The notes under the pieces: generated by a model
Databases searched by the model: none
What the model was told of the DNA's origin: nothing
What the model saw: the letters and a program-made list of their open reading frames with translations, nothing else
From: Hemiscyllium ocellatum
Taxonomy: Eukaryota
NCBI RefSeq assembly: GCF_020745735.1
Contig: NW_026867489.1
Coordinates: 486,015 to 550,014, forward strand
Reading direction: 5' to 3'
DNA: 64,000 nt
Position numbers and translations under genes: made by a program
In this document: positions 7,047 to 60,648 of the stretch, piece by piece
Layout: each line of letters opens with the position of its first letter
How positions within the stretch are numbered: position 1 is the first letter of the stretch

Positions 7047-7420
7047 GGTTTTTGTACGGGGACTACTGTGCCGTACAGCAGTGTGTGTCCCATGGCACAA
7101 AAGTACACAGCACAGTTTGAGAGAAGAACCTGAGCAACATTTAAACAAAGTGTTTTCTTTCCATTGTACAAAACGGCAAACAAACTGTCTTGAAAATCTC
7201 CTGACATACCTCTTTTCCCCGTGCTGAATACTTTCACTAAATATCTCGGATTGTCTCAAGTATATGAATGTACTAGATTACAGTTCGACCAGATGCTGTG
7301 GAAAAACGACTGCTCTGCCATTCCACGACAATTAATTTGCGAATATTCTGGAATACTGCATCTTCGCCGTTTGTCTCTGCAACAAAGCACAATCTACCGA
7401 GTGTCTGGGAAACTTTATAA
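7047..7420 (-). pseudogene. TCR alpha/delta-type V pseudogene with near-consensus 23-RSS
   Basis: Minus-strand frame reads *DNPRYLVKVFSTGKRGMSGDFQDSLFAVLYNGKKTLCLNVAQVLLSNCAVYFCAMG, then CACACTG (7085-7079) / 23 nt / ACAAAAACC (7055-7047). The 5' part (KVSQT...) is frameshifted and has stops; the 5' boundary is approximate. Confidence 0.85.
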
Positions 7421-9519
7421 CTCGTGGTGCTAACGGTGAACATTTCAACAGAGACTGACCACGCAGCATGATGAATATTATCATTTAGGAGCATGGGGAA
7501 CACATGCCGCTTTTTCCAGTTTTGCACAATAACAACAGGATCAATAAAATATTTTGGGAGCTCCAACCCGACGGGGAAGAGTAAACCCAGATTTGGGGGA
7601 CACTTTGCTTCGAGGAAAACCATGGGGCGTTTCCTAAGAAACAGGATTGGTTGATACCTCCGAGTGGACAAAGTTTGTAACCAATCACTGTTTCTTCAGA
7701 CAAATTATGTTCTCTGGCTGTTTGCCTTTCTCTCCGTATCTGCTTCCCTATCTTTCTCTGTATCTGCAGCCTCCCCTTCTTTTCAGTGACGGTCTGACTC
7801 TCTCAATCCAATGTGCTTTCTGCATCTCAAATTACACATTCACTATGAATATACATTTCTTCTACTGTATCGCTGGAAACGCAAAGCGCTGAAATCAATA
7901 TTTTCCAACTGTTCCATTTTGATCAGTACACCAAAACTCTCCATGACTAACAACATTTACAAGAAGCTGAATATGATCATCTCACCTCTGACTAAAGATG
8001 ACCGTGAAAGCTACTGCACCAAAAATTCCCAGATTATAAAAAGAGTGTGAATCAGTTTCATTTCTGCATATTTTCTTTCTGCAGACAATGAAGTTCCAAA
8101 TATTATCGGGAATTGGGTGTTTTAATTTAAATAAAACCAACAGATATTGACAGATATGACAGGGTGATTAAGTGAAAAGAAGGCGAAATTAAGGTTTCAA
8201 TTTGGAGTCGATATTATTTCTGCCTTTATGTTTGTCTGGACTGACAGGAATATTAACAAAAATAATGACGCACATTTATTCAAGAGAAAATTGCATCAAC
8301 TTGCGATTTTATATATTTAGCAGGCAAGGGCGATTTCCCTCATATTATGAGAAGAGGGATCTATATCCTCAAGATTTTATATTCACTCCAGATGATCCAG
8401 CGACGTTAACGTCAAGGATACGTTGCCAGGCCAGAAAAAAAAACACACGAGATGGACTAATAATCTGGTTGACTGATCTGGATTCTAATCATGGAATGCA
8501 GGTATTTGCATTTACTTATTCAAAAAAAAAGCAATTGCAATTAGCGCTAGTATTTGACCGGAGTACCAAATTGTAATAAAACATGTTGTGTTGGAAAAGA
8601 AACCTGTTACTTTCTTTTATTTAGTTTGGGTTTAAGTTTTTTTGCGTACAAAGTTAAATATGAATTTCCCTCGAAATTTACCTTATTCTTTATGTAGCGA
8701 TGCAGATCTTTAATTGAAACAGAACAGTGCGGATGAAAGCAGATTGACATTTTCAGAATGTCATTTTGACAGTTTGTTTCATGCATTCATTCGCATAATA
8801 TAAGTATTATTTAACCTTTACTCTTTTAACAACTGAAATAGTATTACTTAGCAACGGCATTGGTTAAAAATACAACGGTTTTATTTCACAGAAGATTCAT
8901 TTGTCGTATTGTACTGTGCAAGGAATCCCTGCTGTTGAAGTATGTGACACAATGTTACACACATCAGAAGGTCAGCAGTAAAGCAGGGAGCGAAACAAAC
9001 TCTTCATGCGGCTACACAGAGCAGAATGTGGAATGGAAGACAAAATCAAGTCTGAGAACCATAATGATTTGGAAGAGCAGATGGATTGGGGCTCACATAA
9101 TGTGGAGAATAAAGAAGCAAAAGGGATAAGTTGAGCGACAGAGGCACGGTCATAAATTTGTCATCCGAAACACAAGATCGCAAAACGGGAGGCCATCAGG
9201 AAGGATGGGGCAGATTCAGAAAAATCGGGCAGTAAACGAAATTGAAGGAGTTTTCATACAATCATGAATAGGGAGACCGTGAATGCAATGAAGCAATCTG
9301 CAAACTGAGAGAAATGCAACTGAAATAACACAACGGTTTGGAGGGAAAGGAGATTATATGGTGAAGGATCGAGAGAAACAAACAATAGACGTGGCGACGA
9401 AGCAAGAAGCTGATTGGATCCATGTCTCGAGATGGAAGGCAGATAAACCAAAGACAAAAAAAAACTAGGCAAAATTTCCCAATGTTTCGAAAGGGGCAAT
9501 ATGTATTAAAACAAAATGA

Positions 9520-10922: not shown

Positions 10923-11809
10923 TCATTTAATTTGCCTAAATGGGCAAAGCAGCATACTCTTGAACTGCTCTCTGAATTTAGCTTGAGATACAACATAAAT
11001 ACAAGTATTTGTGCAACAACTCAGCATCTGGAGCATAAATCCAATTTCCTGTACGAAGTATGGTAATAATATAGCCTCATAACCCAACCAATACATTCGG
11101 TACCAAATAAAATACAGCATGAAAGTTGTCCATAACAGGATAAAATTCCCTGAGATAAAAAATAGTAAAACTATCGATTTTCTTCGCATCTCCATCTCTG
11201 GGTCATTTGCATTGTTCTCACCGCTCTGACGACGCAGTCTCCTCCTGGCTTTGCTTGTCACCAAAATATGCCTGATGGTTAAAGAATTAAACAGGAGAAT
11301 GAGGGAAAATGGAATTGCAGGTGTTAGAATGTGATGAACGAACTCTATTGAAGCCCAAATAAGAGATTCAAGAACTTCCATTGTTCCACCACAAAACCAG
11401 GGGATGTTCTCAAGCCAGTACTCATCCATTAGCACGAAAAACCAGAAAATGTTTTTGATGCAGCTCAATAAAGTCACTATCCCTAGAACAACTAGCGCTG
11501 TCTTCTTGGTGCAGTATTTATATTTCAGCTTCTGGCAACAAATGGCCACAAATCTATCAAATGTGAAAGTGATAGTGAACCAGACGGAACAATCAGTGAC
11601 TACGTAAACCAGGAAAGCATGGATATTGCACACGCGGACGGAATACAGGAAAGTAAACTGTGATTCGTAAGCAATAGGAATATGCCTCAATATTAGGTCA
11701 AGAACTACGACCAGTAGATCTGTTGATGCCATCGCTAAAAGGTATTGGGTGATACATTTGGAGAGGCCGCACTTGCCACGGGACAATATCAAAATTGTCA
11801 GTATGTTAA
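10923..11809 (-). CDS. GPR139/GPR142-like GPCR #2, exon 2 (divergent subtype; full CDS 327 aa with exon 1 15417-15513)
   Basis: 289-aa ORF with LLAMASTD, TFDRFVAICC, PAIPFSLILLFN and SCCTNTCIY. Acceptor tttctttgcag precedes 11809, giving G|TT AAC ATA (V-N-I). Confidence 0.92.

Positions 11810-12682: not shown

Positions 12683-12756
<74 letters not shown>
12683..12756 (+). repeat. (GT)~37 microsatellite
   Basis: Perfect dinucleotide run inside the GPCR #2 intron. Confidence 0.98.
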
Positions 12757-12758
<2 letters not shown>

Positions 12759-24840: not shown

Positions 24841-26377
24841 TTAAGTCATTGATGTTCGATAAAATCGTGCAGCTAATCATAGTTTTTTCCAGAAGTTTAT
24901 ACATTTTCCTTCCCAGACTTGTCAGAATTATTCTAACATGCAAGACTTTGATATTAAGGGTCTTCAACAGGTCTTCAGTGTTTGTAATACATTATAAAAT
25001 AATACCTGCACTATGGAAGATCATCGTGCATTACTTTCTTTTTCATTACAACGAAGAGCACTTTTGCATGCAGTGTAATTATAGACAAATAGTCCAGGAG
25101 ACACTGACTTATGGTGAATGACAATGCACGCACATTAAACGAGAATATTGTTACAGATTAGGATCCATTGTAATTCAATAAAATGCAATCTAGCGTTTTC
25201 GACCATTGTAGGATAGATTGTTTATGATGTTGTCGTAAAATGCCTTTCTGCACGCGTCTCAGAGCAGTGTCTGTATATGAATTATCTTGTCATAATTCAT
25301 TCAGCAATTTTTTTCATGCAAACCTACATTCAGTGATTAAACGAATTTACATTGAAATCGTAGAACGATGTAATGCGGTGTAGAGTTCACAGTGGACGGC
25401 ACCATTGTTAATCAGGTTTTGGAATTAATTAAAGTTTAGGCGAAAAGACATCAGTCGTCATGCAAAACTTTGAAGCTGTTGTTAGTTTGATGCTCTGCCG
25501 TGAATTTTCGCAGATTTTGGATGATTGTATTGCATAATAATTTGTCAGAAAATCTTTTTTTCACTGTTATCAAAACATGCAGTTGAACGTTGTCTCGGAC
25601 CACCTCGCTGCATAAAGGAAACACCGGTACAATTTAGCAATCCAATTTAGTTTTGAATTATATGAGATGGTATCAAATGATTTGATCAAACGAACGTCTG
25701 ACTGAATGGCAGAGAAGCAGAGCTGTTCAGGTGAAAATTTCAGTGATTTCGGTTTTAATCATTAAATCAATAACTGACATTGTTAGATGCATTAATTTGA
25801 CGAATACAGAGGAGATAGGATCAAAGTTAACAATTGTGTTATGTCATAGGAACGAATGTGGCGAGATGCTGGATCTTCTGAAAATTTGAAGGATGAGATT
25901 GTAAAGCGTGAGGCATTGTCAAGGAGCCAACGTTGGTTAACGGTTATGGGTGCAAGGATGTCTGCTGTTTGGTACGTGTACACTCAGGCAGCCATCTTAA
26001 TCCAGTTGTCCTGCATTGGACAAGTAGTCACTGACATTAACTCAGTGATTGGAGACTGATGCCTTTTTTACCGAGATTGATTGCATTGTCAGATGAAGTA
26101 GATGTGTGGTTTTAGACTTCGCAGTAGAAAGTCAGAAGTGAGAGACGTCAAAAGGTTATACTTGAAAAGACAAAATTTCAGAATGTTGGTACTTCATCAT
26201 TTCAATTGACAGATATTTGATGCTGTATGGTTGCCAAACATTTGTCAATGATTTTGGAACAGGAAAAGTTTGAAAGATGCAAGGTGATAGTTAAAGATTG
26301 TTTTGTAAAAGATTGTGTAAGTCAGAAGGCAGTGTTTGTATTGTGCTCAGCAATGTCTATCTCTTGATCTCTCACAA

Positions 26378-27190
26378 CTAACTTGCTGGCGATCATAATC
26401 GTATTGTGAGGACACTGCGGTGTCTCATGAAGCATCACGCTATTACCTGGGGAATGCTTGCAGTGTCCGATTTTCTTGTCATCACAACCGCGGTCATCCT
26501 CAACTAAATCAGCCACATCTACTTTGGCAAAGTGTTATGTCCAACATTCCTGTGTGCACTCTCAGCATCGTCCTGGTCTATGGCACCTGCAATTGCTCAG
26601 TCTGGCTGACAGTCGCCTTAACCATCAACTCTTTTGCTGCAATTTGCTGTCAGAATCTGAAGATCAGATACTGCACTGAGAAACCTGCATCACTGGTCTT
26701 TGGAATGATCTGTGTCCTGAGTTGAATCAAAAACGTCCCTTTTCGTTTTGCATTACATCCATTGTTCATTTTGGACGATGTACCCTAGGTCTTCAGTGTC
26801 AATGCCAACTTCTATACCTGGCCAGATTGGCAAATCTATGATTGGCTCTTTCATATATTTACGCCCTTTCTCCAGTTCTTGCTCATTCTTTTGCTCAACG
26901 TCCTGACCATAAGACACACCATAGCATCAAGAGAGCTCGCAGAAGGCTCTGGGGCGCTGAGAAGCGACAAGACACAGAGATGGCCAACGGCAAAGGACCA
27001 TAGCACTCCTGTTTGCCATCGCTCTAAGCTTTCTCCTCCTAAGGTCCCCTCTTGTCAGACGTTTTATCTACGTGCGATGCAAAGCTGTGGGTTACTTCGA
27101 TGGACTGGGTTTCACTGACCCACGATATACCTTTGAGGAGACAACCAACAAACTCGAGTTAATTAGTTTTGGCAACAAAAAGAATTTATT
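26378..27190 (+). pseudogene. GPR139-like GPCR pseudogene #3 exon 2 (paralog of #1/#4)
   Basis: Fragments CSVWLTVALTINSFAAICCQNLKIRYCTEK, IFTPFLQFLLILLLNVLTIRH and GYFDGLGFTDPRY align to #1/#4. There are multiple in-frame stops (TGA, TAA, TAG) and frameshifts, and the acceptor reads ...cacAA instead of AG. Confidence 0.9.
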
Positions 27191-28740: not shown

Positions 28741-30442
28741 ATTTTGATGTAAAATTCTTTCACTCTACTACATGATGGTTCAACATCCATGTGTCTATGG
28801 CTGAATATCTGTTGTGCAAGCTTTTATGTTTGCCTGTTTGCATTTTAAGGTATGCATGTTTCTGTGTGTGTGTGTTTGGGGTGTGGTGGTATGGTGTCTC
28901 CTCCTTTCGTACCAGTCATGTTTTTGGTGTCCTTTGAGTATCTGTCCATGTGTGTATTTCGTTTGCATTATTATTCTGTCTGCCTCTGTGTTCAGATACA
29001 TACAAGTATAAACAACTGCAAATGCTCGTCTGGAGCATCTTTGGATATGTCTAAAACCGTTTCAGAAAGTTTTGGCAGCAACAGTGGAGACAAATTGTGT
29101 GGAGTGCTGACAATGAATTAAGAAGGTCAACATTTCTTTCCTGGTTGATTCATCTTATTTGATTGTGGCATAATGTCACCCTCTGCTGGCGTATATTCGC
29201 TACTAAGTCCAAAACAATCAAATTTTCCAGAAGGCAGCTGCACGGCAGCAGCATCAACTCATCTGCAGGGTCATATTGCAGGAGGTGGCACTGATGTAGC
29301 TCCTACTTTATCACTCACAAATAGGTACAGTGTGTACAGATGAGCGCAGTAGGTAACTTGAACATGAAGTAAAATGTTGGCCGACATTTCGCTGTTTGAA
29401 CCGAGATTAATTTAATTTCCTCACGGTCTGTGTTTGAGTGCATGGTAGCACACTGCTTGTGGTTCTGGAAAGACCACATCATGCAGCACCTCCAATCTAT
29501 TGTACTTGCACGATGCTGGCAGTAAATTCGCATGCCTTAATTCCAAACGCTCACTAACGCAATGCTACACCGTTCAATGCAGCCCAGAGACAGTTAAATG
29601 GGTTAATTTATTCTGCTTCTGAAACTCCACAGAGAAATGAATTTCATTTGAACCAACACAAGAAACTGATTCGTTTAAATATCTCTGTGTTTAGTGTCTC
29701 TGACTCTGTGGAATCACTGTGCGCTTGGCATACAGGCACAGTCAGAGTGTAGAGCAGGAATTCTCAGCTTTTTTTCATTGCATCACATCTAAGATCCGAA
29801 TTGCTAACTGTGAACACAAACAAAGGGGCATGTTAAATACCATCTTGCCTAATTGATCACTTGCACTGGGACTTTATGTGTGTCATTCTGTAACAAGTCA
29901 CTCCTGAAACTAATATTCTTCAAGGTCATTGAGCAGCATTTGCAAGTGATAATCTTTGGCATCATCAGTAGCGCAAATTTAAATATTCGAAATCACTGAC
30001 CTATCTGAAACATTGACTGTTAAAAGATGAGAAACCGGTTTCATTCATGTCTTAGTGATGTTGTCTACCTCAGACAGTCGTCGTTCCTCGGCACTTGATT
30101 TATGCAAAACCACTCGTGACGTACGATTGGATAATAAGATAAATTGGGACAGTTCGGAGAAACTGTATTATGCGCAGTTCACTGGAAAGAGAACAAACAT
30201 ATGTCGTTTCCCGCTCCTTGCTCAGACCGTTTGGATTGTGGGACAAAGAGCCAAACGTGGATTGGATCTATCTGGTTATTCTGCCAGCCGTGAGCCAGGA
30301 GCAGATGTAACTCCTCATCTCAAATCTCAGATGAAACATTTCACTTTCACCTCCCTACATTCAAATGCACAATCAATTCTGCACTAAAATAACTTAGCTT
30401 CAGTTCTCTCTGTTCAAATCCACCATCAGCCCTGAAAGCACA

Positions 30443-30995
30443 TCAGTTATTATTACTTAGTCATTCCTCACTGCTTTAGCTCTCTTAACAGGTAAGTTCT
30501 CACTCTAACAATTCTCACTTGTCGATGACACGGACAACTTGCTCTTTAATTGTACTCTACCTCCATTTGCAATAAGTTCCTTTGCATTGATTGCAGAATG
30601 TAACGCTAAAATCTTCTTTTTTTCAAATCTATATTTCTGCAGCTGTTCGTCGTGCGTGTTAGTTCTCACAGGAACCAATTCCAGTAACTGAGATTGAAGG
30701 AGACTCAGTAACAGTTTACTTCAGTTATTTGATTTCGGCTGCCTTCTATTTCTCCTAACTGTACCGTCTGTACCATCAGGACGGTGGAGAGTCCCTTACC
30801 TCCTTGAGCTGCAAGTCATCACATTAAAATGTTTTCAAAGCACAGTGTTGGCGGTCGTTTTTCTGCATTTCTGGATATTTCGAAACACGAGGGGAATTTC
30901 ACTATCAGCGGACTGCGGCTGTCAGACAGTGTAGTATATTACTGCGGGCTGAGAGACACAGTGACAGGAAACAGGTGGAATTTCGAGCAAAAACT
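30443..30995 (+). pseudogene. TCR alpha/delta V pseudogene (leader remnant to 30491, V exon 30643-30956) with intact 23-RSS
   Basis: Leader remnant SFLTALALLT + GTAAGT, no ATG seen. Acceptor tttctgcag. V reads SQEPIPVTEIEGDSVTV...HSVGGRFSAFLDISKHEGNFTISGLRLSDSVVYYCGLRD with stops and a frameshift. CACAGTG 30957-30963 / 23 nt / GCAAAAACT 30987-30995. Confidence 0.9.
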
Positions 30996-31079
30996 CTGCT
31001 GTCGTGGGGAACGGTGAATGGGCTCGGAGCACATTGAAAAGAAGCCTATACTTACTAAACTTAAACTTTAAAATAGACA

Positions 31080-32129: not shown

Positions 32130-32560
32130 AGAAATTAAGTGTCGGAGTTAGGCCATTTAGCCCTTCATATCAAAAGCCCCATTCAATATGCTCATGGCTG
32201 ATCATGCAATTTTAATATCCCACTTTCGCCGTCTCTCTATGCCTCTTGATCACTGTCATAACAAGGGCCATGTCCAGCTATTCCATAAATACAGCTAATT
32301 AACAGACTCCATCAGCTGTCAGTTGCACAGAATTCCAAAGGTTCATATCTCTCTCAGGTAAGAGATGCTTCCTCTTCTCAGTCACGATTAGATTACCTTT
32401 TATTCTGAGACTGTGACCCTAATTCTGGACTTCCCCAATATCGTAAGCATTCTCTCACCATCTAAACTGTCAAATCCCTTCATTATTTTATCTGTTTCTC
32501 TGAGATCCTGCCACGCCCGTTCGTCTAAACTCAGGCGAATACAAGCCAGGTGAAACGATT
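32130..32560 (-). mobile_element. CR1 LINE 3' fragment
   Basis: Reverse-complement CR1 tail (taggccatttagccc...tcatggctgatc, ttattctgagactgtgaccct). Confidence 0.6.
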
Positions 32561-32984
32561 TAAAATACAAGTGTGACAGAATAGAAAGATTTTACCTGCA
32601 CCTTTTGCATCGAATTCTTTCTGAACGTAATGCAGCAGTACGTTCACGAAAGCTGACCATAGCTGATCTTGTTCTGGCGAAGTAAAAAATTGACAATATT
32701 AAAAACAAAAGAACTAATTCGAAAAACGCCAGTTAACAACAAGAAGAATCAACGCTTTGAATTAGATTAAAAATAATGCAAGTGCAGAGTCGACATTAAT
32801 TTTCACTTGGTGCCAGGCATAGTTATGAATCTTATACTGCGTGACTGTACATGCATGCATCTCTGCATCTGAATTTACATGGTTTGCCTACAGTCCGTAA
32901 CTTATTGTATTTCGCAGCCACTGACTCACAGAATCGCAACAGTATGGAAGCAGGTCATTCAGTCAATGAATCCACACCGTCCTG

Positions 32985-35099: not shown

Positions 35100-36040
35100 T
35101 TCCCAAAATGCTCTTCACCTTCACTACATTTTCATGGTCGTTTTTTCGCTTCCCTCTCTCTTGCTCACTAATGGCGTATTAATTCCACATGTGTATTAAC
35201 CATCTCTTTTGCCTCAATGTTGAGACATTGGACTGTTGTACTATCTCATTTATTGTCATTTAAAACTGCTCTCACTTTGGAGTTTTCTTCTGTCTTTCTC
35301 ACTGAAACTTTTTCTTTCTTTATACCTCTCTCTCTCTTCCTCTACCTATTGCTATATGCGTCTGCTTCTCTCAATGACTTTCTGTCAGTCACTCTCAGTC
35401 TCTTTGTTTCTCGATTTCTCTACCCTTGAATGCTACATTTTACTCCAACTCACAGGTGTCTATCTGTTTCTCCATGAGCCTCTTTTATTTTTCTTCCTAC
35501 ATTTTGTCGTCATTCCGTCCGTGTTTCCTTCCCTATCTCGCTTAAAATGAATACATTTATGTCTCGATCTCTCTCTCTCCGTCCACAACGTTCTGCGCCC
35601 TCATAATTCTGCTTCTGCTCTCTCTCTCTCTCTCACTCTCACCGTCTCTCTCTCTGTCTCTCTCCGTTGTCACTCTCTATCTCTCTCTCTCTTTATCTAT
35701 CTATCTCTCTTCCGATTGCTCTATCTCGGTTTTCTTTATCTCTGTATTTCTGTTTCAGAATGTGTTCCAATCTTTTTTAAGTCTTTCTTTGTGTCACGCT
35801 TCCATATCTGTATTTCTGATTATTCTTACACACCCTTACACTCTCCCTCGCTCCACTTCCCTTTCTGTTTGGTATCCCTTTTATATTTCCCACTGTTTCC
35901 TATTACAAATTTGTAGCGGTATATGTGTCCTTCTATTAATCGTCTTTGCCTTTACTTTCTATAGTTATTTGAGCCTTCATTTCTCTTCCACATCAAACCG
36001 TGATATTTCTGTGGCTGGTTCTTCTCTTTCTCTCCACATT
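35100..36040 (+). repeat. Pyrimidine-rich degenerate (CT)n low-complexity tract
   Basis: Purer (CT)n runs at ~35560-35710; this tract produces the spurious L/S/F-rich ORFs here. Confidence 0.8.
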
Positions 36041-39143: not shown

Positions 39144-39483
39144 AGTTTCAGTGAGAGCATCCATTTGTATCCTGTCCCTGTGTCTATGACCATAATAATA
39201 AAGTGCACTGTCAGGCAAACACAGCTCGCTGATGGTGAAACTCCCCTCTCTTTTGAAATTACCCAGAAATGCAAAGAATTGTTTGCCAATACTTCCTGCT
39301 TTGAAACCCTCTCCATGAGATGGGATTAAATCATGGATGTGGAAATTCTCCACCGTACTTACTTTAGTTTTAACGAGTGGAAATTAGCTGAGATCAAATG
39401 CCTGAAGTGAAATATTACCGTAATTCCTTCTATCTGTGTCGCTGCAAGCGGCTCTTATTTGACCCAGTCTGTTCAACTGACAT
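39144..39483 (-). pseudogene. TCR alpha/delta V pseudogene, inverted paralog of 30643-30995
   Basis: GSIGKQFFAFLGNFKREGSFTISELCLPDSALYYYGHR (second Cys lost), with several stops in FR1/FR2. RSS is CACAGGG (39182-39176) / 23 nt / ACTGAAACT (39152-39144). The acceptor ctatatttctgcag is identical to that of its paralog. Confidence 0.85.
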
Positions 39484-42222
39484 CTGCAGAAATATAGATG
39501 TCAAAGTCGTTGTTTTTACTGTTACACTTTAACATCAATGGAATGGAGCAAATTGCAAATGCAGTGAGAGCACAACCAACAAGCAAGATGTCAGTGTCAC
39601 CAGGAAGTTAGAATGATCACAGTGAGAAGAACGTAACTGTTAAGCCATTTGCAGAAGTCGAACTGAGTAAATAGTAATAGCTGATGCTGGGTTTCACGGT
39701 TGGTAGTGAGTTTGAACAAATGCAGGTGAAGCTGAATTGTTTCTGCATTAAGTTGGTGGCCCGTTTAAATGTATGGAGCTGAAGCTGACTTCGTTTAGTG
39801 CAGGGCTGACGGTGCGTTTAAAAGAGGAATCTGAAGATGGAATGTTTTCTCTCAAAGCATAGATGTGGAGTCATAACCGGTCGAGGGTCAACAATAGCAG
39901 CGTCAATTGGGACACCCAATGAATGTCCAGTTTTTGACCCCCAATCCATGACCCTTGAGCAATGAACGGGGAGTGAGCTGAAATTATTCTCACTGTCGTG
40001 AACTTCACAGAATAACCCCAATGCAGTGTGATAGAAACAGAAAAATGTTGCTGATTTGGAAATTGACACAATTTGATCAGTCGTGACACAACAGTAAATA
40101 GGATCGTGTGCATTTATTAATTGTGTGCTCACTCTGTTTATCAAGAAGGCGTGAATTTGTCTATCAACAATCATGACCTGGTGAAACTGTAACAGGAACA
40201 GTGTGTACTTGAATGTATAGTGATTTAGATAAAGTACAACAATAATCTGGGCCCATTCAACATTCTAAAACTGGAATTAAATTTAACCTCAAAAAGGAAA
40301 CGTAACAAGAAGGCAAATGAGCGAGCAAAATAATCTTTCGTACCTGGAAAGATTCAGCACAACTGTAACAGTATTCCAAAGTGACCATAATGAGAAAAAT
40401 AAGAATGCATACTGATAATCATGAATTAAGACAGAGCAACATCTATCATTCAAATAATTTGCGTTTGATCCTGGGAAAATCAAATTCGGTTCGGACATTA
40501 GGAGACTCACCCTCGTGTTCAAATGCTGTACGTGTTTGCAGTGCTTTTTGTGGATGTTGCGTATTTCTCCAGTTGAGTGTCAGTGATGCAGGTAGTGAAC
40601 GCTTCTGCATACAGTACACATCAAAATGACTGTATTTTATGAGATGATATCGTTTTTCTTGAGTCCTATTGGAGCTTTACACATCCACGATATTTCATTA
40701 GCCATGACTGGAACAAAATGATCATATGAAATGGCAGAGCAGACTCGAGGTTAAAGTGTCATTCGATGTTGCTAAATTTAACGTTCATTTTTGATTTGAT
40801 ATTTGAATACGAAGGCACATTCTCCAGCTGAAAAAGACGCCATCAAAAATTAATATAATAACAGAGACTTGAAAAGATGGGATCTCGCTTCTCCAGAAAA
40901 CGTGGAACCAGGACATTACTGAAAAGAAATAGTTTAACTATTACACGGTTTAAGTGAAATACATTCGGAAATTCGAAATGGTGCATGACTCCACGACAAA
41001 GGCCTATCCATATCGAAGTCCACTAAAATAACAACTAGAGATATCAAGAAAGATGCACTCATACAAAAACACACTGGAACCGAATAGAACCGTTGACATC
41101 TGAAATGGGTAAAATTTGGAAAACACAGAATGGAGAAAGTCATAAGTGGGCTTATGACTCCAACTGTTAACATATGCTAATGTTACCAGAGCGAAGGCCA
41201 TGTGAGGGCACTTCAGGCCCTATTAAGTTAGTCACATATGTAGTAACTTCTTCGAAGCTCGTGTACAACATGAAATTCAGAGAATGAGGTCCAGAAAATA
41301 TTGGACAGAATCAAACAATAGTTTCGAGGAAATTTAAGTTGTCAGAGACGCTGAAGAGACAATTCCTCAGAGTAACAGGAAAGCCACAGTGAACCTGCAT
41401 AAAGTGAAACCAACTGACAACTGAGAGACTTTGGGACAACCTCTCTGTACAAGCAACAGAAATGTAAGTGTGGAAATAAAATGAAACCGATTGTGATAAT
41501 TCTAATTAATTTGAAAACGATAAAGTCGAGCTCTGCAATGGCCAAATATAAACAAAAAGTGGAAAACGACAGAACATTTTTGCTCTTTCGGTATTATTGG
41601 TCTCTGACAGTCAATGTTCAGGTTTTAGTGACTCTGTGCTTTTGGATCGATTTTCCTGGGAGCAGTGATAGAAGGTATTTGGGTCATTCTTGGAATTATG
41701 GTTTCAGAGATTAAATTCTCACTGATGCAGGAAAGCTTACTTGGATTTTCCTTCTTTAAAAAAAGGAAAGTTAACATCATGAAAATACAAAACACACAGG
41801 AATATTATTCGATGATGCTTTCACCCCTCGCAACCCCTATATGATGAAAGTGGAAACCAATTCGTCCCGGAGTGCTTGCTGCCTCCCAAGAGTCCAACAC
41901 ACGTGTACTCCTCCACTGCTTATACACCGAGAATATGCAATGTATTGATGAATCTGCTAACACTATTCACCTCTTACGTTAAATATATGATGCTGCTTTA
42001 CTGATTGATTTTCCAATATCAATGTGTAAAATTTTTGCAAGTTACAAGTGCTGGTTGACATGAATGCCAGAACCTTTCCTACAAGTATGACGTTTTCTCT
42101 ATAAATAGTTCATTGCCAAACAATAGATGCCATTTAACCAAGGCAGTTATGTCAGCAAACTTTTCATCACACCCCATCCTAACACTGTTCTCCGAGTCCA
42201 GCTTTACAAACCACTGCAAACA

Positions 42223-42469
42223 TAATTTTGAACAGATCTTTCTGTGTCACTATTTCTGTCATTCCTACCATGCACAAGTTATTTTATTGTACGGCTCTTT
42301 TCGTGTTCTGTATCACTTTGTCAGTAATCGAACAATGTTCTGGTTTTTATACAGTTCCTTCCATGCCCTGTACGACTGTGCATTTGTTTTACCTCCATGT
42401 TTTCATACAACCCTACCAACCAAATATTCAGGATATTGTACAGCAGTATCCATGATATGTATCACTTTG
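42223..42469 (-). repeat. Tandem array of RSS-23-like units 3' of V-delta copy E
   Basis: RSS1 CAAAGTG/23/ACAATATCC; a heptamer-less remnant (nonamer-like ATGAAAACA); CACAGTC (42380-42374)/23/ATAAAAACC (42350-42342); a 21-nt linker; CAAAGTG (42320-42314)/23/ACAATAAAA (42290-42282); then a truncated unit AATAGTG (42254-42248)/16 nt/TCAAAATTA. Confidence 0.82.
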
Positions 42470-42766
42470 AGAACTGTGCACCCACGCCTTGCAGAATCTC
42501 TCAGTTATATTTAGGAGGTCATGAACCGACTGAATTTCACTCCTGTATGGATGGACGCAAAAATTCCTTCCCATGAAGCATTTTCTTTGTTCGCCTCTCC
42601 TCAAGTCTCTCTGTGAACGAAACATCTCGGGAGCCTGTTCTGTCAGCAGACGGCACCAGTAAACTTTCGACTGACAGAAGACCGAATATTCACACATCAG
42701 TGTAAAAATGTCAACACCCAACAAACTTTTGCAGAGGCGGACTTTGGGACACAAGCTAACTGGAAT
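42470..42766 (-). pseudogene. NAR-TCR 'supporting' V-delta-like pseudogene (copy E), retains extra CDR1 Cys
   Basis: After acceptor ttccacag: LVSQSPPLQKFVG / DIFTLMCEYSVFCQSKVYWCRLLTEQAPE / GEANKENASWEGIFASIHTGVKFSRFMTS*I*LRDSARRGCTV. Stops and frameshifts present; no leader seen upstream. RSS is CAAAGTG (42469-42463) / 23 nt / ACAATATCC (42439-42431). Confidence 0.82.
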
Positions 42767-45315
42767 CTGTGGAATAACATTGAGCATTATTAATAATTCT
42801 GCCACTGTTTACAAAGGAAAATTGTAAATCACCGAAATTAATCTGAGTTTTTTTTGTGACAGTTAACTTTGTTGGAATTCCATTGGACCTATTCTCTTTT
42901 GTTTTCAAAACATACATTGCTGAGATGACAAGATGACACTTTCTTATGTATGTCGACTTCCTATGTTGTCGAATGAGCTGCCAAAACGGATGATTGGAAC
43001 TGATTGAACAGCTGCTTTAAAAAGTGTAACGGACAGCAGCAGAATAAGGCAAAAAGCATGGTTAAGGGGGAAAAGCATCTTCAGTGGCAACAATTGTAAA
43101 AGACTCCAAAAAAGTCAGTAACCAGACGAGGGTCGAATGAAAACCTGTTTTATTCTCTGATGGATGTTATATTTTAGGTCCGATTTACTGTGATGAAAGG
43201 TAATCCCAAGGAAACCTCGTATGCTTACTGAGACAATTTCCAAAAATAGCTGCTCCAAAGCTATCCAATAGTTTTGTACCACAGTGCATGGCAAGACCGA
43301 GAAACAATGACGTGATTGATTAGTACTGAAAATTCAGTAATTTTCTGCAGTTGGCATCTGTCCAGGAAATTCCACCTGACCTTGTTGTTTTAAAATCAGT
43401 TTCTTTTCTTGTCTGTTTACCTGTACCATGAAAAATTTCACTTTATTTTTATTTATTCTCTGCATTTTCTTTATACCATTTGAATTTCTTCCAATCGTAG
43501 ATACCTGTCCCAACTTCTCTCAATCGACTGTTGTGGTGAATCTGCACTGCTGTTGCAGTAGTTTTGTTGTTACTTCGTAGAAATCCTCATTCAGCTCTTT
43601 CTCAGTTTAAATTATTTGCAGAGATTTATTGACTTCTGATTAATTCTAATGGAGAATCAGTTTTGTTTTGCCTTAATTCTAGAGATAGGGAATATACCGT
43701 TGGAACAAACTGATTTATGCCTGAGTGCATATACGCTAACGTCCATCCCAGTCAGAAATCTAATTGGCATTGCTTTAACAGAATGCGTTGTAGATGCACT
43801 CTGTTTGCCTACTAAGTGATTTTAAAATCTTCCATAAGTAACTCAATACAACGTGCTCCAAACTTTTTTTTTAGGTGGCGAGGTCCACATTCTCTGGATT
43901 ATTCATTTTGAATATTTCTCCATCGTCACGACTTGATTGTTCTGTTCGTGAACATAATGCATTAATGCCTAAATCCTCTTGGCTAAGTATCAAACACCCG
44001 GTCATGGCACATAACATTTCTCTGAAGTCTCACTGCGCCTCTGTGGTACTCTCGGAAAAGAGATTCAGTTAAAATGATCAAATTCTGGGACTGCACTGCT
44101 TTATGAGATACGGAATACACAGACTCAAGACAATCACTTCACTGAAATATAATGCCTCTCTGTAGTTGCAATATCCGATCCCTTACGCTCAAATTGTGAC
44201 TCTTTTCCAGACTTGTTTAGCCTGGAGTAAAAATCACTGAATATATTACCATTAAAACTTGGATCAGTTCAAAATAAAGCATTTTTCCTTCCTCTAACTG
44301 GTTAGCAACGTAGCGTCCACTTCACAATCGCTTCATACAGGACAATAACTTTATCTCAGGGGACTGTCTGATTAACCTTAGCTGCACTTGTTCCAAAACA
44401 AATCCAGGCGTACACAAGTATGCAGAGCAAACTTTGACCCACCATTCCAAGGTGGAACCCATTCAAGCACTTCTATCCACAGAGCTCAGCGAACCCTCTG
44501 GCGATGGAGTTGAACTTTGACGAATGCCCAAGGAGTTGTCAACATATTCGTTTTGATGAATTGTTTATTCTCGGTTGTAAATGAGCATTGTCCCGCTTTG
44601 GTTTCGTTCTCTTAAGCAGCTATATTACAGTCTAATGTCTCAAAACATCTACATTATGAAAAAAAAAGGTATTTTCAGTTTCACATTGGGACTGAGGCTG
44701 CAAAATTTGGAATGTGACTGCTTTTATGAAGTCATATATGAAAACAGTTGAAAATGGTAATTTGATCATTCGTTTAATGGATTCCCTAGTAAGGACAAGT
44801 CCTCGAGACATAAATTCATGGGTCCTATATGTGTTGCTCGCCTAGAAATGCTATCGATTTTCTAGTGGGACAAGTGTTTTAATTGAATCTTTGCAATCTA
44901 GGACCTCTTTGAGACTTCAATCTCTGCCTTGTTATGGGTCACTGTGATGCATGTTTTTTTTTAATCGAAGCAACAGACTGATTTCTGTCCAAGAATAGAG
45001 GGCAGAATTTCACTACTCTTTCCTCATTAAAACCAGATTATGTCACTGATAATAGTATCCGTGTCTTGACATGTGAAATTACTGATGATGCTGGTGCAGT
45101 GAAACTGCCGACACAAGGCTGGGTTCCATAAGAGACTTCTGCCTGAGCAATCCAGGATCCGACTCCCATATTGTCAGTAATTCGGATGCAGCAACGGTGA
45201 CTGTTCCTTCCAAAATGTGTGTTTTAACGTTCTTTTGCCATTGACGATCACAATAATACACGATCCATTCACTATAAAGATCGATAACACTTTGGAGTGT
45301 GGTGTCACTTCCAAA

Positions 45316-45769: not shown

Positions 45770-46046
45770 TAACTGTACTGAGCTCTGCCGAAATAGGTGG
45801 CGGTGCCTTCAAATCTGACAACCTGAATTTCTAATGAAAATGTATTTTGTGTTTTATTCATTATTATAATAATTCTACCGATGGTGCAGATCCGCTCCCC
45901 CTCTGTCGCTGACTGTGTTTGTATGAAGAAATGCCCATTATCAAAAAGGTAATTACAAAAAACAATGACCATTTTAAACACAGGTAATGGAGAGAGAATG
46001 ACGCTTCTTCCTTGTCATGGTTGTCGGATCCTGTGTAACTAACTGA
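45770..46046 (-). pseudogene. VNAR-like (NAR-TCR V) pseudogene
   Basis: QLVTQDPTTMTRKKRHSLSITCV* / NYLFDNGHFFIQTQSATEGERICTIGRIIIIMNKTQNTFSLEIQVVRFEGTATYFGRAQ. Matches VNAR architecture (short FR2-FR3 without CDR2, GR..TxNK..xFSLxI..V..EDTATY.C). Frameshifts, second Cys lost, RSS not recognisable. Confidence 0.72.
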
Positions 46047-48695: not shown

Positions 48696-51600
48696 TTGAG
48701 GAACTGACAGATGCAGGTATATTTACAACACTTAAAATGCATTTCATTATGTGCAGGAATAGGAAAAATTTGAATGGATGCTATGCTAGCCAAAGCATGT
48801 GGGAGAGTTTAACTGGGGAATATCGTTGACTTGGACGAGTTGGATTTAGGGGTGCTGTATTACTTTCTGACTCTGGGATATTTAACGTTGGACAGAGGAT
48901 TGATTATGTCCCTATTGATAGTGCACTTGACACTGCATTTCTAAACAATGATCCGAAATTTTCATAGCTAGTGTCTGTTTTGAGGATGAATAATACCATC
49001 TGACAAGTTAACTCTGATTTCCCTCCACAGATTGCTGATAGTTCCGCTGAGCGTTTCGAGTAATTTCAGTCTTTTTATTTTGTTTCTGTTGACGTACTAC
49101 ATCAATTTCTCTGTTCGTTTCACTTTCCAGGATCCACAGAATTTTGCTTTGAAATTAGATTTTAACTAGTTTAACAAGCGCCAACCAGATCCAGGTAGAA
49201 AAATGCAGTCAATGGAAAGCATATTCAGACTATGAAGGGGCTAAAGACAATAGTTCAGTCTTCTTGACATTTAATGGGAGAAAATTTCTCTTTAGTCACT
49301 GCCTCAGGACGTTTGACATATTGGACTGCAGTTTGGAACTGAAGGAAATTTGTTTCTATCGTCCTTCAAGATGGTAGAATTCGAAGGAGGAAGAGATTTT
49401 GTCCTTACTTGGATCAAATTGAGATGTTCACCTCTCACTCACACCCCTCCGACAGAAGGCAGAGCCTGGTGTCATTTCAGATCAGATGACAAGTCACTGC
49501 TGGAGATGGTCTGTGTAAACCTGTTTGTTTTTTTGTAACAATCCATTGGGTTCGATGATCACTTTCTTTTGATGACAGCCCCAGATATTATCAGAATAAT
49601 TCAGCTTAATTTTGCGAGTTGCTTCTAGCTAACTATAGGTCCTCTCTCATTGGCTTTTGCTTTCTGTCTAATCAATAGAACAGATCATTAGAAGATGAGG
49701 ACTTGTAGCAGGGTAAGTCAAAGCAAACAAAACATTTGGATCTGACAGACGATTTCATTAATTATTTTGCAGATTTTGAACTTGGGACAAAGAAGTACCG
49801 TTCCCAACAAAGATTAACCGGACATGAGAACCTTCATTCATGGATTTCTTTAAATTCATCTTAAGTTGCGGTTGCATCAAGAAACAATTATATTCTCAGA
49901 GTCTGCATTTGATTACTGCATCTGACCAATTCATCGTTGATGTTTTAGGAAACTGACTTAATTGTTGCTGAAATGTCAAGTTTCATTTTTACTTCTATAC
50001 TCGGGTACTTTAATCTTGTCGCTGTCCCCATTCAATCATTTGTTGTGACTGACGGCTTCAGAAGCTTTTTCGCATGCTAATTGTTGGGAACTTTGGATGT
50101 AATAGTCGGGATGGCTTGTTGAGGTCATACAGAATGTTGATGCCTCTTCTGGAGAACTATGTGCAGTTTTAGTTGCCCTGTTGTCGGTAGGATATTCTTA
50201 AATTGTTGAAGGTTCTGAAAACGACGAGCTTGTCAATAATACCGGTAAAGGATGTGAGTTGAGTTAAACAAGTAAGCTGGACAGCTCGGACGTCCATTAA
50301 TTTAGCGAAGGAGTTTGAGGGTTGACATTGTAGAGGTTTCTTTTTTAAAATAACGAGGGGCATAGCAAGGCTTTTATTCCATCGGATGGGCGATTCCAAA
50401 AGTAGGGATATATTTTTAGGGGGAGAGGAATACATTTCAAAAACGAAATGAGGGTCAACCTTTTCAAATTAAGAGTGGTCCATATATGAAAAGAACTGCT
50501 GGAGGAAGTGACGGATGCAGGTATACTTACAACACTTAAAATGCATTTCTTTACGTGCAGGAATAGGGAACGTTTGGAGGGATGTGTTGCTAGCCAAAGC
50601 ATGTGGGAGAGTTTAACTGGGGAATATCGTTGACTTGGACGAGTTGGATTTAGGGGTGCTGTATTACTTTCTGACTCTGGATATTTAACGTTGGACAGAG
50701 GATTGATCATGTCCCTACTGATAGTGCACTTGACACTGTATTTCTTAACCATGATCCGAAATTTTCATAGCTACTGTCTGTTTTGTGGATGAATGATGCC
50801 ATTTGAAAAGTTAACTCTCATGGCCCCTCCACAGATTGCTGACAGGTCTGCTGAGCGTTTTGAGTAATTTCAGTATTTTTATTTTGTTTCAGTTGACGTC
50901 CGACATCATTTTCTCTGTTCGTTTCACTTTCCAGGATCCACAGAATTTTGCTTTGAAATTAGATTTTAACTAGTTTTAATAAGCGCAAAACAGATCCAGG
51001 TAGAAGAACGCAGTCAATGGAAAGCATATTCAGACTATGGAGGGGCTAAAGGCAATAGTTCAGTCTACTTGACATTTAATTGGAGAAAAATTCTCTTTAG
51101 TCACTGCCTCAGAACGTTTGACATATTGGACTGCAGTTTGGAACTGAAGGAAATTTGTTTCTATCGTCCTTCAAGATGGTAGAATTTGAAGGAGGAAGAG
51201 ATTTTGTCCTTACTTGGATCAAATTGAGATGTTCACCTCTCACTCACACCCCTCCGACAGAAGGCAGAGCCTGGTGTCATTTCAGATCAGATGACAAGTC
51301 ACTGTTGGAGATGGTCTTTGTAAACCTGTTTGTTTTTTTGTAACAATCCATTGGGTTCGATGATCACTTTCTTTTGATGACAGCCCCAGATATTATCAGA
51401 ATAATTCAGCTTAATTTTGCGAGTTGCTTCTAGCTAACTATAGGTCCTCTCTCATTGGCATTTGCTTTCTGTCTAATCAATAGAACAGATCATTAGAAGA
51501 TGAGGACTTGTAGCAGGGTAAGTCAAAGCAAACAAAACATTTGGATCTGACAGACGATTTCATTAATTATTTTGCAGATTTTGAACTTGGGACAAAGAAG

Positions 51601-52563
51601 TACCGTTCCCAACAAAGATTAACCGGACATGAGAACCTTCATTCATGGATTTCTTTAAATTCATCTTAAGTTGCGGTTGCATCAAGAAACAATTATATTC
51701 TCAGAGTCTGCATTTGATTACTGCATCTGACCAATTCATCGTTGATGTTTTAGGAAACTGACTTAATTGTTGCTGAAATGTCAAGTTTCATTTTTACTTC
51801 TATACTCGGGTACTTTAATCTTGTCGCTGTCCCCATTCAATCATTTGTTGTGACTGACGGCTTCAGAAGCTTTTTCGCATGCTAATTGTTGGGAACTTTG
51901 GATGTAATAGTCGGGATGGCTTGTTGAGGTCATACAGAATGTTGATGCCTCTTCTGGAGAACTATGTGCAGTTTTAGTTGCCCTGTTGTCGGTAGGATAT
52001 TCTTAAATTGTTGAAGGTTCTGAAAACGACGAGCTTGTCAATAATACCGGTAAAGGATGTGAGTTGAGTTAAACAAGTAAGCTGGACAGCTCGGACGTCC
52101 ATTAATTTAGCGAAGGAGTTTGAGGGTTGACATTGTAGAGGTTTCTTTTTTAAAATAACGAGGGGCATAGCAAGGCTTTTATTCCATCGGATGGGCGATT
52201 CCAAAAGTAGGGATATATTTTTAGGGGGAGAGGAATACATTTCAAAAACGAAATGAGGGTCAACCTTTTCAAATTAAGAGTGGTCCATATATGAAAAGAA
52301 CTGCTGGAGGAAGTGACGGATGCAGGTATATTTACAACACTTAAAATGCATTTCTTTACGTGCAGGAATAGGAAACGTTTGGAGGGATGTGTTGCTAGCC
52401 AAAGCATGTGGGAGAGGTTAACTGGGGATTATCGTTGACGTGGACGAGTTGGATTGAGGGGTACTGTATTACTTTCTGACTCTGGGACATATAACGTTGG
52501 ACAGAGGATTGATTATGTCCCTATTGACAGTGCATTTGACACTGCATTTCTAAACCATGATCC
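48696..52563 (+). repeat. Tandem duplication, ~1805-bp unit, 2 full copies + ~250-bp third
   Basis: Duplicate ORFs offset by exactly 1805 (49350/51155; 50169/51974). The unit holds CR1 and Penelope fragments plus unique sequence. Confidence 0.95.
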
Positions 52564-53109
52564 AGTTTTGTCACAGCTGAAAGTCTTCCTCACGATATTG
52601 CACGGGGCGCTGAACTCAAGCATTTGGAAACACTTTCCTCCATTCTTGTTCACCAGGTCAAACGATGTGTTTGTCAGAATACAACGTCACCAGAATTTGC
52701 ATGTGAATGTTTTCTTCTCAGGTTCTCTCCCTTGTTACCTAACAACGGTTTCAAATTATTCAGAGTTTAATCCTTAAAAATATTACATGGATCTATAATT
52801 TAAAGACTAAACTGCTTCCCAATCAACACATACATATAAATTATTCTAATACTAAAGGTGCATGGAACCGCTGAAGGCATTCAAGAGAAGCAAACACTTT
52901 GGTTTCCATAAAATACTGAACCCGAGTTCAGGTTCTGGGCCATCACTGACTGCACTTGATCGATACTAAAAGAAAAACAGAAAACGCTCATGGGGACAAC
53001 AGGACCACAGAATTTGCAAGGGAAATGGGAATATCCTCTTTGCTAAATTTGTCAACACAAAGGAAGAAACCGAAAGCCCGACCTTTTCGTTGATGTAAAT
53101 ATAACCAAA

Positions 53110-54724: not shown

Positions 54725-55626
54725 CTAATTTGGCAACGATAGTGATCCTTTTCCAAAAAAGGTGCGGTCTGTCTCGTGGTATCACCTACTACTTACTGTC
54801 AATTGCAGTAACTGATTTCATTGTCATCATTGTTGCTGTCATAATCAATCGGATTGGGAGCATTTACTTTAGATACAGCCTTCTATCAACCACCCCTGGC
54901 TGCAGTATCAGCACTGTTTTGGTCTATATCAGCCGGGATAGCTCCGTTTGGTTGACTGTTACATTCACCCTCGACCGTTTTGTTGCCATCTGCTGCCAGA
55001 GCCTGAAGACCAGATACTGCACTGAGAAAATTGCGTCAGTCATCATAGGAATTGTCTGTCTACTGAGCTGTGTCAAGAACGCCCCTTTCTTCTTTGTCTA
55101 CCAGCCCTTATACATTCTGGACGGGAAGCCCTGGTTCTGTGACTTAAAGTCCAGTTATTATACCTTGCCGGCTTGGAAGTGTTATCAATGGATGGACCAC
55201 ATGCTGACCCCCTTCCTCCCTTTCCTCCTTATTCTCCTGTTCAACGCCCTGACTGTTAGACACATCATAGCAGCCAGCAGAGCACGGAAAAGACTTCGAG
55301 GTTCTGAGAATTCCAATGATGCTGAGTTGGCCAACCGCAACAAGTCCATTGTCTTGCTCTTCACAATTTCCCTCAGCTTTCTACTTCTCTGGGCCACCTA
55401 CGTCGGACGATTCCTCTACGTGCAGTTTACAGGAGAGGGTTATTTTGGCGGACTGGATTTTAATGATCCACAATTTATCCTTCAAGAAATGACCAACCTG
55501 CTTCAGTTATTCAGTTCTTGTAATAATGTATTCATCTATGCAGTGACCCAGACAAAGTTCCGACAGGAGCTAATGAAGTTGCTGCTCTATCCTTACACGT
55601 TCTTCAAACGTTTTATTAAACGATGA
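54725..55626 (+). CDS. GPR139/GPR142-like GPCR #4 exon 2 (full CDS 323 aa; close paralog of #1, opposite strand)
   Basis: 298-aa ORF with LLSIAVTD, TLDRFVAICC, PFLPFLLILLFN and SSCNNVFIY. Acceptor ttacag ends at 54724, giving G|CT AAT TTG (A-N-L). Colinear with #1 without gaps. Confidence 0.93.
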
Positions 55627-60229: not shown

Positions 60230-60648
60230 TAAAGAGTTCAGATATTTTTTCTATTATTTTGAGGATGAAAGCTCAGACATATACGGCATTGTCATCAGCT
60301 GACGCCCCAAAATGGTTAAACTGGTGAGTTTTATTCTGGTTCTGAGTTCTGCAGAGAAGCTCCTTATCTAGTTGTTGCCGGTACCAATACAGATAATAGA
60401 TGCTTTCTGTTGTACTGGAGGTGCATCTCAGAGTCATTGCTTCACGCTGTCTCCTACTCTCAGAAGGCTGAGACTGAGTTATGTAATTACCGTCATCCTG
60501 TTTTGTAACATGTTCAGAAGGAAGAAAACACTGTAATGAAAACTTCACTCGAATAATTATGCTCTTATATTTTGAGCACGAAAACAATGGACTATTTCTT
60601 ACCGACAATGAGAATTGTGAACAGAAGTCAGGTGCGGAATATCCGCGT
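60230..60648 (-). pseudogene. TCR alpha/delta V pseudogene with leader (60603-60648) and internally deleted V exon
   Basis: Leader (ACG)RIFRT*LLFTILIV+G, then GTAAGA. V exon reads DGNYITQSQPSESRRQREAMTLRCTSSTTESIYYLYWYRQQLDKEL, deletion, TSLTI..QL / DNAVYV*. RSS badly eroded (CAAAATA/24/ACAAAATTG). Confidence 0.85.

Follow-up and report, generated by a model that had tools for sequence, protein, structure and literature searches.

A tandem array of RSS-like units behind a supporting-type V-delta pseudogene of Hemiscyllium ocellatum and its inverted paralogous copy

The window analysed here is a 64-kb stretch of DNA from Hemiscyllium ocellatum. On its minus strand, at 42-46 kb, it contains a NAR-TCR-type cassette with the relics of an NAR-like V and of a J segment, followed by a leaderless V-delta exon of the 'supporting' type and, behind this exon, by an array of about four head-to-tail 60-nt units (42469-42222), which resemble 23-spacer RSSs. 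A related array, termed array A, lies on the plus strand behind another, broken V (20230-20519). The coordinates of these and of the other features are collected in Table 1.

Table 1. Positions of the gene relics, RSS-like units and other features in the window
Feature	Position	Strand	Remarks
NAR-like V relic	~45772-45981		upstream of the J relic; lacks the W of WYRK
J-segment relic of the NAR-type cassette	43229-43286	minus	read directly; aligns to the other J relic
Leaderless 'supporting'-type V-delta exon, pseudogene	42479-42766	minus	open frame, degraded core motifs (YWCR, FCKAW)
Heptamer-like CACAGTT abutting the V coding end	42472-42478	minus	no nonamer 12 or 23 nt away
Unit 1, the V's own 23-RSS	42431-42469	minus	CAAAGTG-23-ACAATATCC; heptamer position 3 mutated (CAA)
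Remnant, 50 nt: linker and heptamer-less unit	42381-42430	minus	aligns to 20541-20592
Unit 2	42321-42380	minus	CACAGTC-23-ATAAAAACC (42380-42342) and linker agaacattgttcgattactga (42341-42321)
Unit 3	42261-42320	minus	CAAAGTG-23-ACAATAAAA (42320-42282) and 21-nt linker; CAC of the heptamer lost
Truncated last unit	42222-42260	minus	7-nt deletion, heptamer lost, nonamer-like CAAAATTAT
Array A, five units	20541-20831	plus	heptamers at 20541, 20593, 20652, 20712 and 20772; behind the broken V 20230-20519
Arm of the inverted duplication with J, V, array and flanks	40099-44335	minus	paralogous to 18423-23546 (plus); from self-blastn
GPR139-like rhodopsin-type GPCR ORFs	598-1494; 10923-11792; 54730-55626; 26237-27178	minus; minus; plus; plus	26237-27178 broken

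The J relic consists of a 12-type RSS heptamer (CACTGTG, 43286-43280), a coding part of about 51 nt (~43279-43229) and the donor GTAAGC (43228-43223), and about 460 nt separate it from the V exon. A more decayed J relic at ~19440-19500, upstream of the other V, aligns to it. Protein search found no homologue of the NAR-like V relic. The V exon opens at the splice acceptor ccacag/att, with the AG at 42768-42767, has no leader and contains a Cys in CDR1 (LMCEYSVFCQ); it reads LMCEYSVFCQSKVYW. In an elephant shark survey (PMC1845163) the absence of a leader and a Cys in CDR1 are given as hallmarks of the NAR-TcR-associated TcR-delta V, and the label 'supporting V-delta', which had been applied to the exon in the preliminary description, is therefore justified; it also agrees with the acceptor and with the upstream J relic, which has a donor and a 12-RSS. 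Degradation has affected the conserved W and the end of FR3, and the frame meets a stop codon at 42428-42430, 49 nt beyond the end of the V. The exon gave no Pfam V-set match at E 0.01, and its translation yielded no word-sharing candidate in a word-indexed protein search and no HMMER match (E 0.001) in a set of 1.84 billion representatives. Judged from its sequence, the exon is a pseudogene of the family and not a working supporting V-delta.

RSS-like elements were scored against the consensus heptamer CACAGTG and nonamer ACAAAAACC, with a spacer of 23 ± 1 nt. Each full unit of the array is made up of a heptamer (7 nt), a spacer (23 nt), a nonamer (9 nt) and a linker (21 nt), which add up to 60 nt. 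A repeat search recovered a single three-copy family with heptamers starting at 42469, 42380 and 42320, spaced by 89 nt (across the remnant) and 60 nt. The spacer is 23 nt long in all three full units, and their nonamers match the consensus in 7 (ACAATATCC), 8 (ATAAAAACC) and 6 (ACAATAAAA) of the nine positions. A full unit in place of the remnant would measure 81 nt, of which about 31 nt are missing. The truncated last unit, matched by nhmmer at 42247-42210 (E 0.12), corresponds in the alignment to the final unit of array A (20772-20831). The unit and linker sequences quoted in the preliminary description were found exactly, and the V's own RSS, the remnant, the 60-nt spaced units and the truncated unit are all present as it described them. 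In the array region an Rfam scan detected no family and an inverted-repeat scan no hairpin. At the border of the V (42478-42463, minus strand) two heptamer-like words stand 9 nt apart, CACAGTT ct CAAAGTG.

Of the units in this array, only that at 42380 has a heptamer beginning with CAC (CACAGTC); those at 42469 and 42320 have CAAAGTG, and neither the remnant nor the truncated unit has such a heptamer. Position 3 of the heptamer is essential to cleavage by RAG, and the units at 42469 and 42320, with CAA, are thus presumably dead. The unit at 42380 agrees with the consensus in six of seven heptamer and eight of nine nonamer positions at a spacer of 23 nt, and it alone in this array still looks, by these motifs, like a competent RSS. 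In this copy, a V extended by a cut at 42380 would not be open, as the V frame stops at 42428-42430.

When the 39-nt RSS parts of the units were compared with each other, 19 to 28 of the 39 positions were shared, as against 10.2 ± 2.8 for random 39-mers from the window (99.9th percentile, 20); the best pair, 42469 and 42320, agreed at 28 of 39 positions in this ungapped count. The alignments indicate that the units are homologous across spacer and linker, beyond matches to the motifs. The clustering of motifs is in itself weak evidence for an array: random windows contain on average 0.33 clusters of at least three lax RSS matches within 200 nt. With units only about 60% alike, both arrays are too diverged for Tandem Repeats Finder, which detected neither. 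In a search of the 64 kb with an nhmmer profile of the unit, the two arrays were found, together with a marginal match at 29702 (E 0.8). The 21-nt linker was also considered as a copy of the 3' coding end of the V; this was not supported, the mean identities being 0.55 and 0.50 compared with 0.49 ± 0.05 in the null.

Self-blastn of the window aligned 18423-23546 (plus strand) with 44335-40099 (minus strand) in three colinear HSPs of 59-62% identity (E 1e-57 to 1e-132). The match that spans the arrays (19805-21095 with 43212-41943) is colinear and has an E of 1e-57. Within the duplicated block lie the J relic, the intron, the V and the array, followed by about 2.7 kb of flank. Array A has one unit more than array 42469-42222; the spacings among its units are 59, 60 and 60 nt, and CAC is retained in all five of them. 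In the MAFFT alignment, 20593 is paired with 42380, 20652 with 42320, 20772 with the truncated unit and the shortened 20541 with the remnant, leaving 20712 partnerless. Between 20593-20651 and unit 2 (42380) the RSS parts are 72% and the linkers 76% identical. A profile built from array A only had its best outside match at 42317-42275, i.e. in unit 3 (E 1.2e-3), and a profile built from array 42469-42222 only had its best outside match at 20593-20649 (E 1.9e-3).

The colinear blastn match, the one-to-one MAFFT pairs and the reciprocal profile matches bear out the likeness to 20533-20810 that had been noticed earlier, and the one-to-one pairing of units inside a colinear paralogous block upholds the proposal that the array is older than the duplication of the V copies. 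What had to be given up is the view of array 42469-42222 as an independent second array: both arrays lie within one inverted segmental duplication, so that one origin is seen twice and the second occurrence is no independent evidence of function. By the alignment, the array comprised at least four or five units prior to the duplication of the block. It is the second full unit that has the best heptamer in either array (CACAGTG at 20593 and CACAGTC at 42380), which could mean that distal units are maintained.

The other V of the pair (20230-20519) contains stop codons and has lost the acceptor AG, and the two V copies (20230-20519 and 42766-42479) differ by indels of 1, 2, 4 and 7 nt, none divisible by three; all other V segments in the window are broken, too. 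Identity between the copies is 64% in the intron, 62% in the V exon, 64% in the array, 65% in the first 400 nt downstream and 67% farther downstream. By these values, V exon and array alike have been free of constraint since the duplication. A difference of about 36% between the copies corresponds to a Jukes-Cantor distance of about 0.5 substitutions per site, by which the duplication, and hence the array, is old.

In the preliminary description it was proposed that selection on RSS function should be detectable as better conservation of heptamer and nonamer than of spacer and linker. The seven full units were aligned with gaps; their mean pairwise identity was 0.65 in heptamer and nonamer taken together and 0.60 in spacer and linker alike (nulls 0.47-0.52). 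Extra conservation of the functional positions did not materialize, which by the proposed measure speaks against selection in the present two copies. In ungapped counts the RSS parts were seemingly better kept than the linkers, and this effect was gone once 1-nt indels were allowed. As both cassettes are pseudogenes, no extra conservation of heptamer and nonamer is expected regardless of function elsewhere, and the lack of constraint in these two copies says nothing either way about live cassettes. Non-paralogous units are 0.63 and paralogous units 0.64 alike, the latter value coming from two paralogous pairs only and both identities being near saturation (gapped 39-mer null, 0.52). Since non-paralogous pairs thus resemble each other no less than paralogous pairs do, the units were probably still little diverged among themselves at the time of copying. 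They had either been amplified recently or been kept alike, and the data fit both.

The preliminary description had stated that none of the conventional V segments carries such an array, and the other V relics of the window indeed do not carry the 60-nt repeat. Behind the V relic that ends at 7086 there is one canonical signal (CACACTG-23-ACAAAAACC) and nothing further on. The V 3'-end relic ending at 29722 (..CACMPS) has likewise a single signal, CACAGTG-23-AACACAGAG (29722-29660, minus strand); its spacer is faintly like the array spacer (nhmmer E 0.8). The V at 60273 is truncated. A paralogous pair of broken V segments, 30957 (plus) and 39182 (minus), has in both copies a second heptamer 73-74 nt on, at 31030 (plus) and 39108 (minus). 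The two heptamers are CACAGTG and CACATTG at 30957, and CACAGGG and CACAGTG at 39182, and the nonamer belonging to the second one is weak. By the unit profile, these second heptamers show no similarity to the 60-nt unit. In a 41.6-kb locus of Heptranchias perlo (L001), which holds a homologue of the GPCR neighbouring the array, there were GPCR copies only, with no V, no array and no match to the unit profile. In the literature searched, no shark V gene is described as having tandem, multiple or duplicated RSSs; the original NAR-TCR publication (Criscitiello et al. 2006) and a review of shark Ig and TCR loci from 2021 were outside this search, and an earlier description is thus possible.

Taking these results together, the array is probably a neutrally decaying relic of an ancient minisatellite-like amplification of the V's own RSS, situated in a dead NAR-TCR-like cassette. 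The V's own RSS would have been tandemly duplicated in an ancestral cassette, with slippage or unequal exchange as the putative mechanism. The whole block (J, intron, V, array and flank) would then have been copied in inverted orientation to yield arrays 20541-20831 and 42469-42222, at a time when the units were presumably still nearly identical to each other. Afterwards, neutral drift would have led to the loss of V frames or core motifs and to deletions of units, and most heptamers or nonamers would have been broken. For array 42469-42222, RAG1/2 binding and cutting are predicted at the unit at 42380 only. In a live cassette, each unit with a CAC and an A-rich nonamer at 23 bp would be expected to compete as a RAG target in the deletional orientation of a V signal, and after a cut at a distal unit the proximal signals would stay inside the coding joint. 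The anatomy of the array, its paralogy, the equal divergence of the partitions and the lack of extra heptamer and nonamer conservation are observed in the window, and what they document is the ancestry of the array, not function or use of the extra signals.

The array could also be viewed as part of a selected multi-RSS architecture of NAR-TCR cassettes, of which the two arrays of the window would be dead, neutral and decayed examples. A promoter-less supporting V-delta would gain by it several entry points for RAG, and the advantage might consist in a more efficient capture of the single V whose use is obligatory, in a stepwise, distal-to-proximal 'multi-shot' rearrangement or in an extended CDR3-delta. 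Such an architecture would be in keeping with an old array inherited through an ancient duplication and with the absence of the 60-nt repeat from the other V relics of the window; moreover, the near-identity of the units at the time of duplication, when by parsimony they were near-consensus, fits maintenance as well as recent origin. However, the window carries no sign of selection, heptamer and nonamer being kept no better and the array having diverged like its flanks, and a distal cut would add 60-240 nt of signal sequence to CDR3, with a stop in the V frame at 42428-42430 in the present copy. On balance, we consider a selected architecture rather unlikely.

Much less credit can be given to the idea that the proximal signal is itself a relic and the second unit the true RSS, in which case the V would be about 90 nt longer and would encode a long CDR3-delta stem. 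The proximal heptamer is indeed crippled here (CAA), the second unit is the best RSS, and the perfect CACAGTG of array A also sits in the second full unit, but the CAA could be explained by decay after the death of the gene, and the frame stops at 42428-42430, ahead of the second heptamer. The NAR-TCR cDNAs in print reportedly have ordinary V-D-J junctions, which counts against a longer V as well. An origin by chance clustering of RSS-like words, or from a piece of a dispersed repeat or transposon with ends like RSS heptamers, would be compatible with the rate at which lax clusters arise in random windows (0.33 per window) and with the negative result of Tandem Repeats Finder. Spacers and linkers are, however, homologous between units and in an exact 60-nt register, the same structure occupies the same place behind a paralogous V, and the unit profile has no other clear match in the 64 kb; an origin of this kind is highly improbable and close to refuted.

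The array shares with the canonical 23-RSS found 3' of TCR and Ig V segments the heptamer-23-nonamer layout, the V-type deletional orientation and the position of the first unit, which abuts the end of the V. A canonical V normally has one RSS, like the relic at 7085, whereas here the signal with its 21-nt linker is repeated four to five times head to tail, and, in contrast to canonical RSSs, most copies in array 42469-42222 have lost the CAC or the nonamer. With the supporting TCR-delta V of NAR-TCR the exon shares the absence of a leader, the CDR1 Cys, the place downstream of an NAR-type V and J, and the donor and acceptor; it differs in that the cassette here is a pseudogene, and the descriptions searched mention no second RSS behind a supporting V. 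Head-to-tail copies, the 60-nt period, gain or loss of units between paralogues and internal deletions are features in common with minisatellites (units of 10-100 bp). In contrast to these, the unit is a recognizable functional element, an RSS, and the identity of about 60% is too low for tandem-repeat finders.

RSSs that serve secondary rearrangements, such as delta-Rec/psi-J-alpha, the kappa-deleting element and the VH-replacement heptamer, are single elements that occupy defined places and whose use in vivo has been shown. Isolated or cryptic RSSs of this kind resemble the extra units in not being the primary signal of a coding segment and in being cuttable by RAG, and by analogy they may serve as a precedent for any function of such units. 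The difference is that here a tandem array stands directly behind a V and is known from its sequence alone. In the usual view of V(D)J recombination, each end of a gene segment has a single signal. If live members exist, a V family that inherits a whole ladder of signals would confront RAG with an unusual substrate, and the ladder may bear on how sharks ensure that it is the V behind a rearranged NAR domain which is joined to D-J-delta. The ladder is proved to be old by the locus, where it was present before a duplication that has since diverged at about 36% of sites, and the two dead copies provide a neutral baseline for judging selection on live arrays.

Further inverted pairs were observed in the window (30341-31059 with 39788-39079, 32233-32631 with 38954-38549, 7629-9345 with 37634-35894, and 596-1515 with 55628-54709). 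They outline a large, old inverted segmental duplication of about 60-70% identity across much of the window, both arms of which contain NAR-TCR-like cassettes, V relics and GPCR genes. None of ten ORFs of the window was present in the protein collection searched. The GPCR ORFs all begin at intracellular loop 1, the first helix being probably encoded by another exon. For the GPR139-like GPCR more than 2000 shark homologues were found, the best of them 65-69% identical, with no ortholog among them. The segments 48698-50772 and 50502-52578 form a duplication in direct orientation, its period being about 1.8 kb; they are 96% identical and contain identical 88-aa ORFs, and this duplication is much younger than the others in the window. 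Long dinucleotide microsatellites are located at 12683-12757, (GT)37, and at 35618-35710, an imperfect (CT)47.
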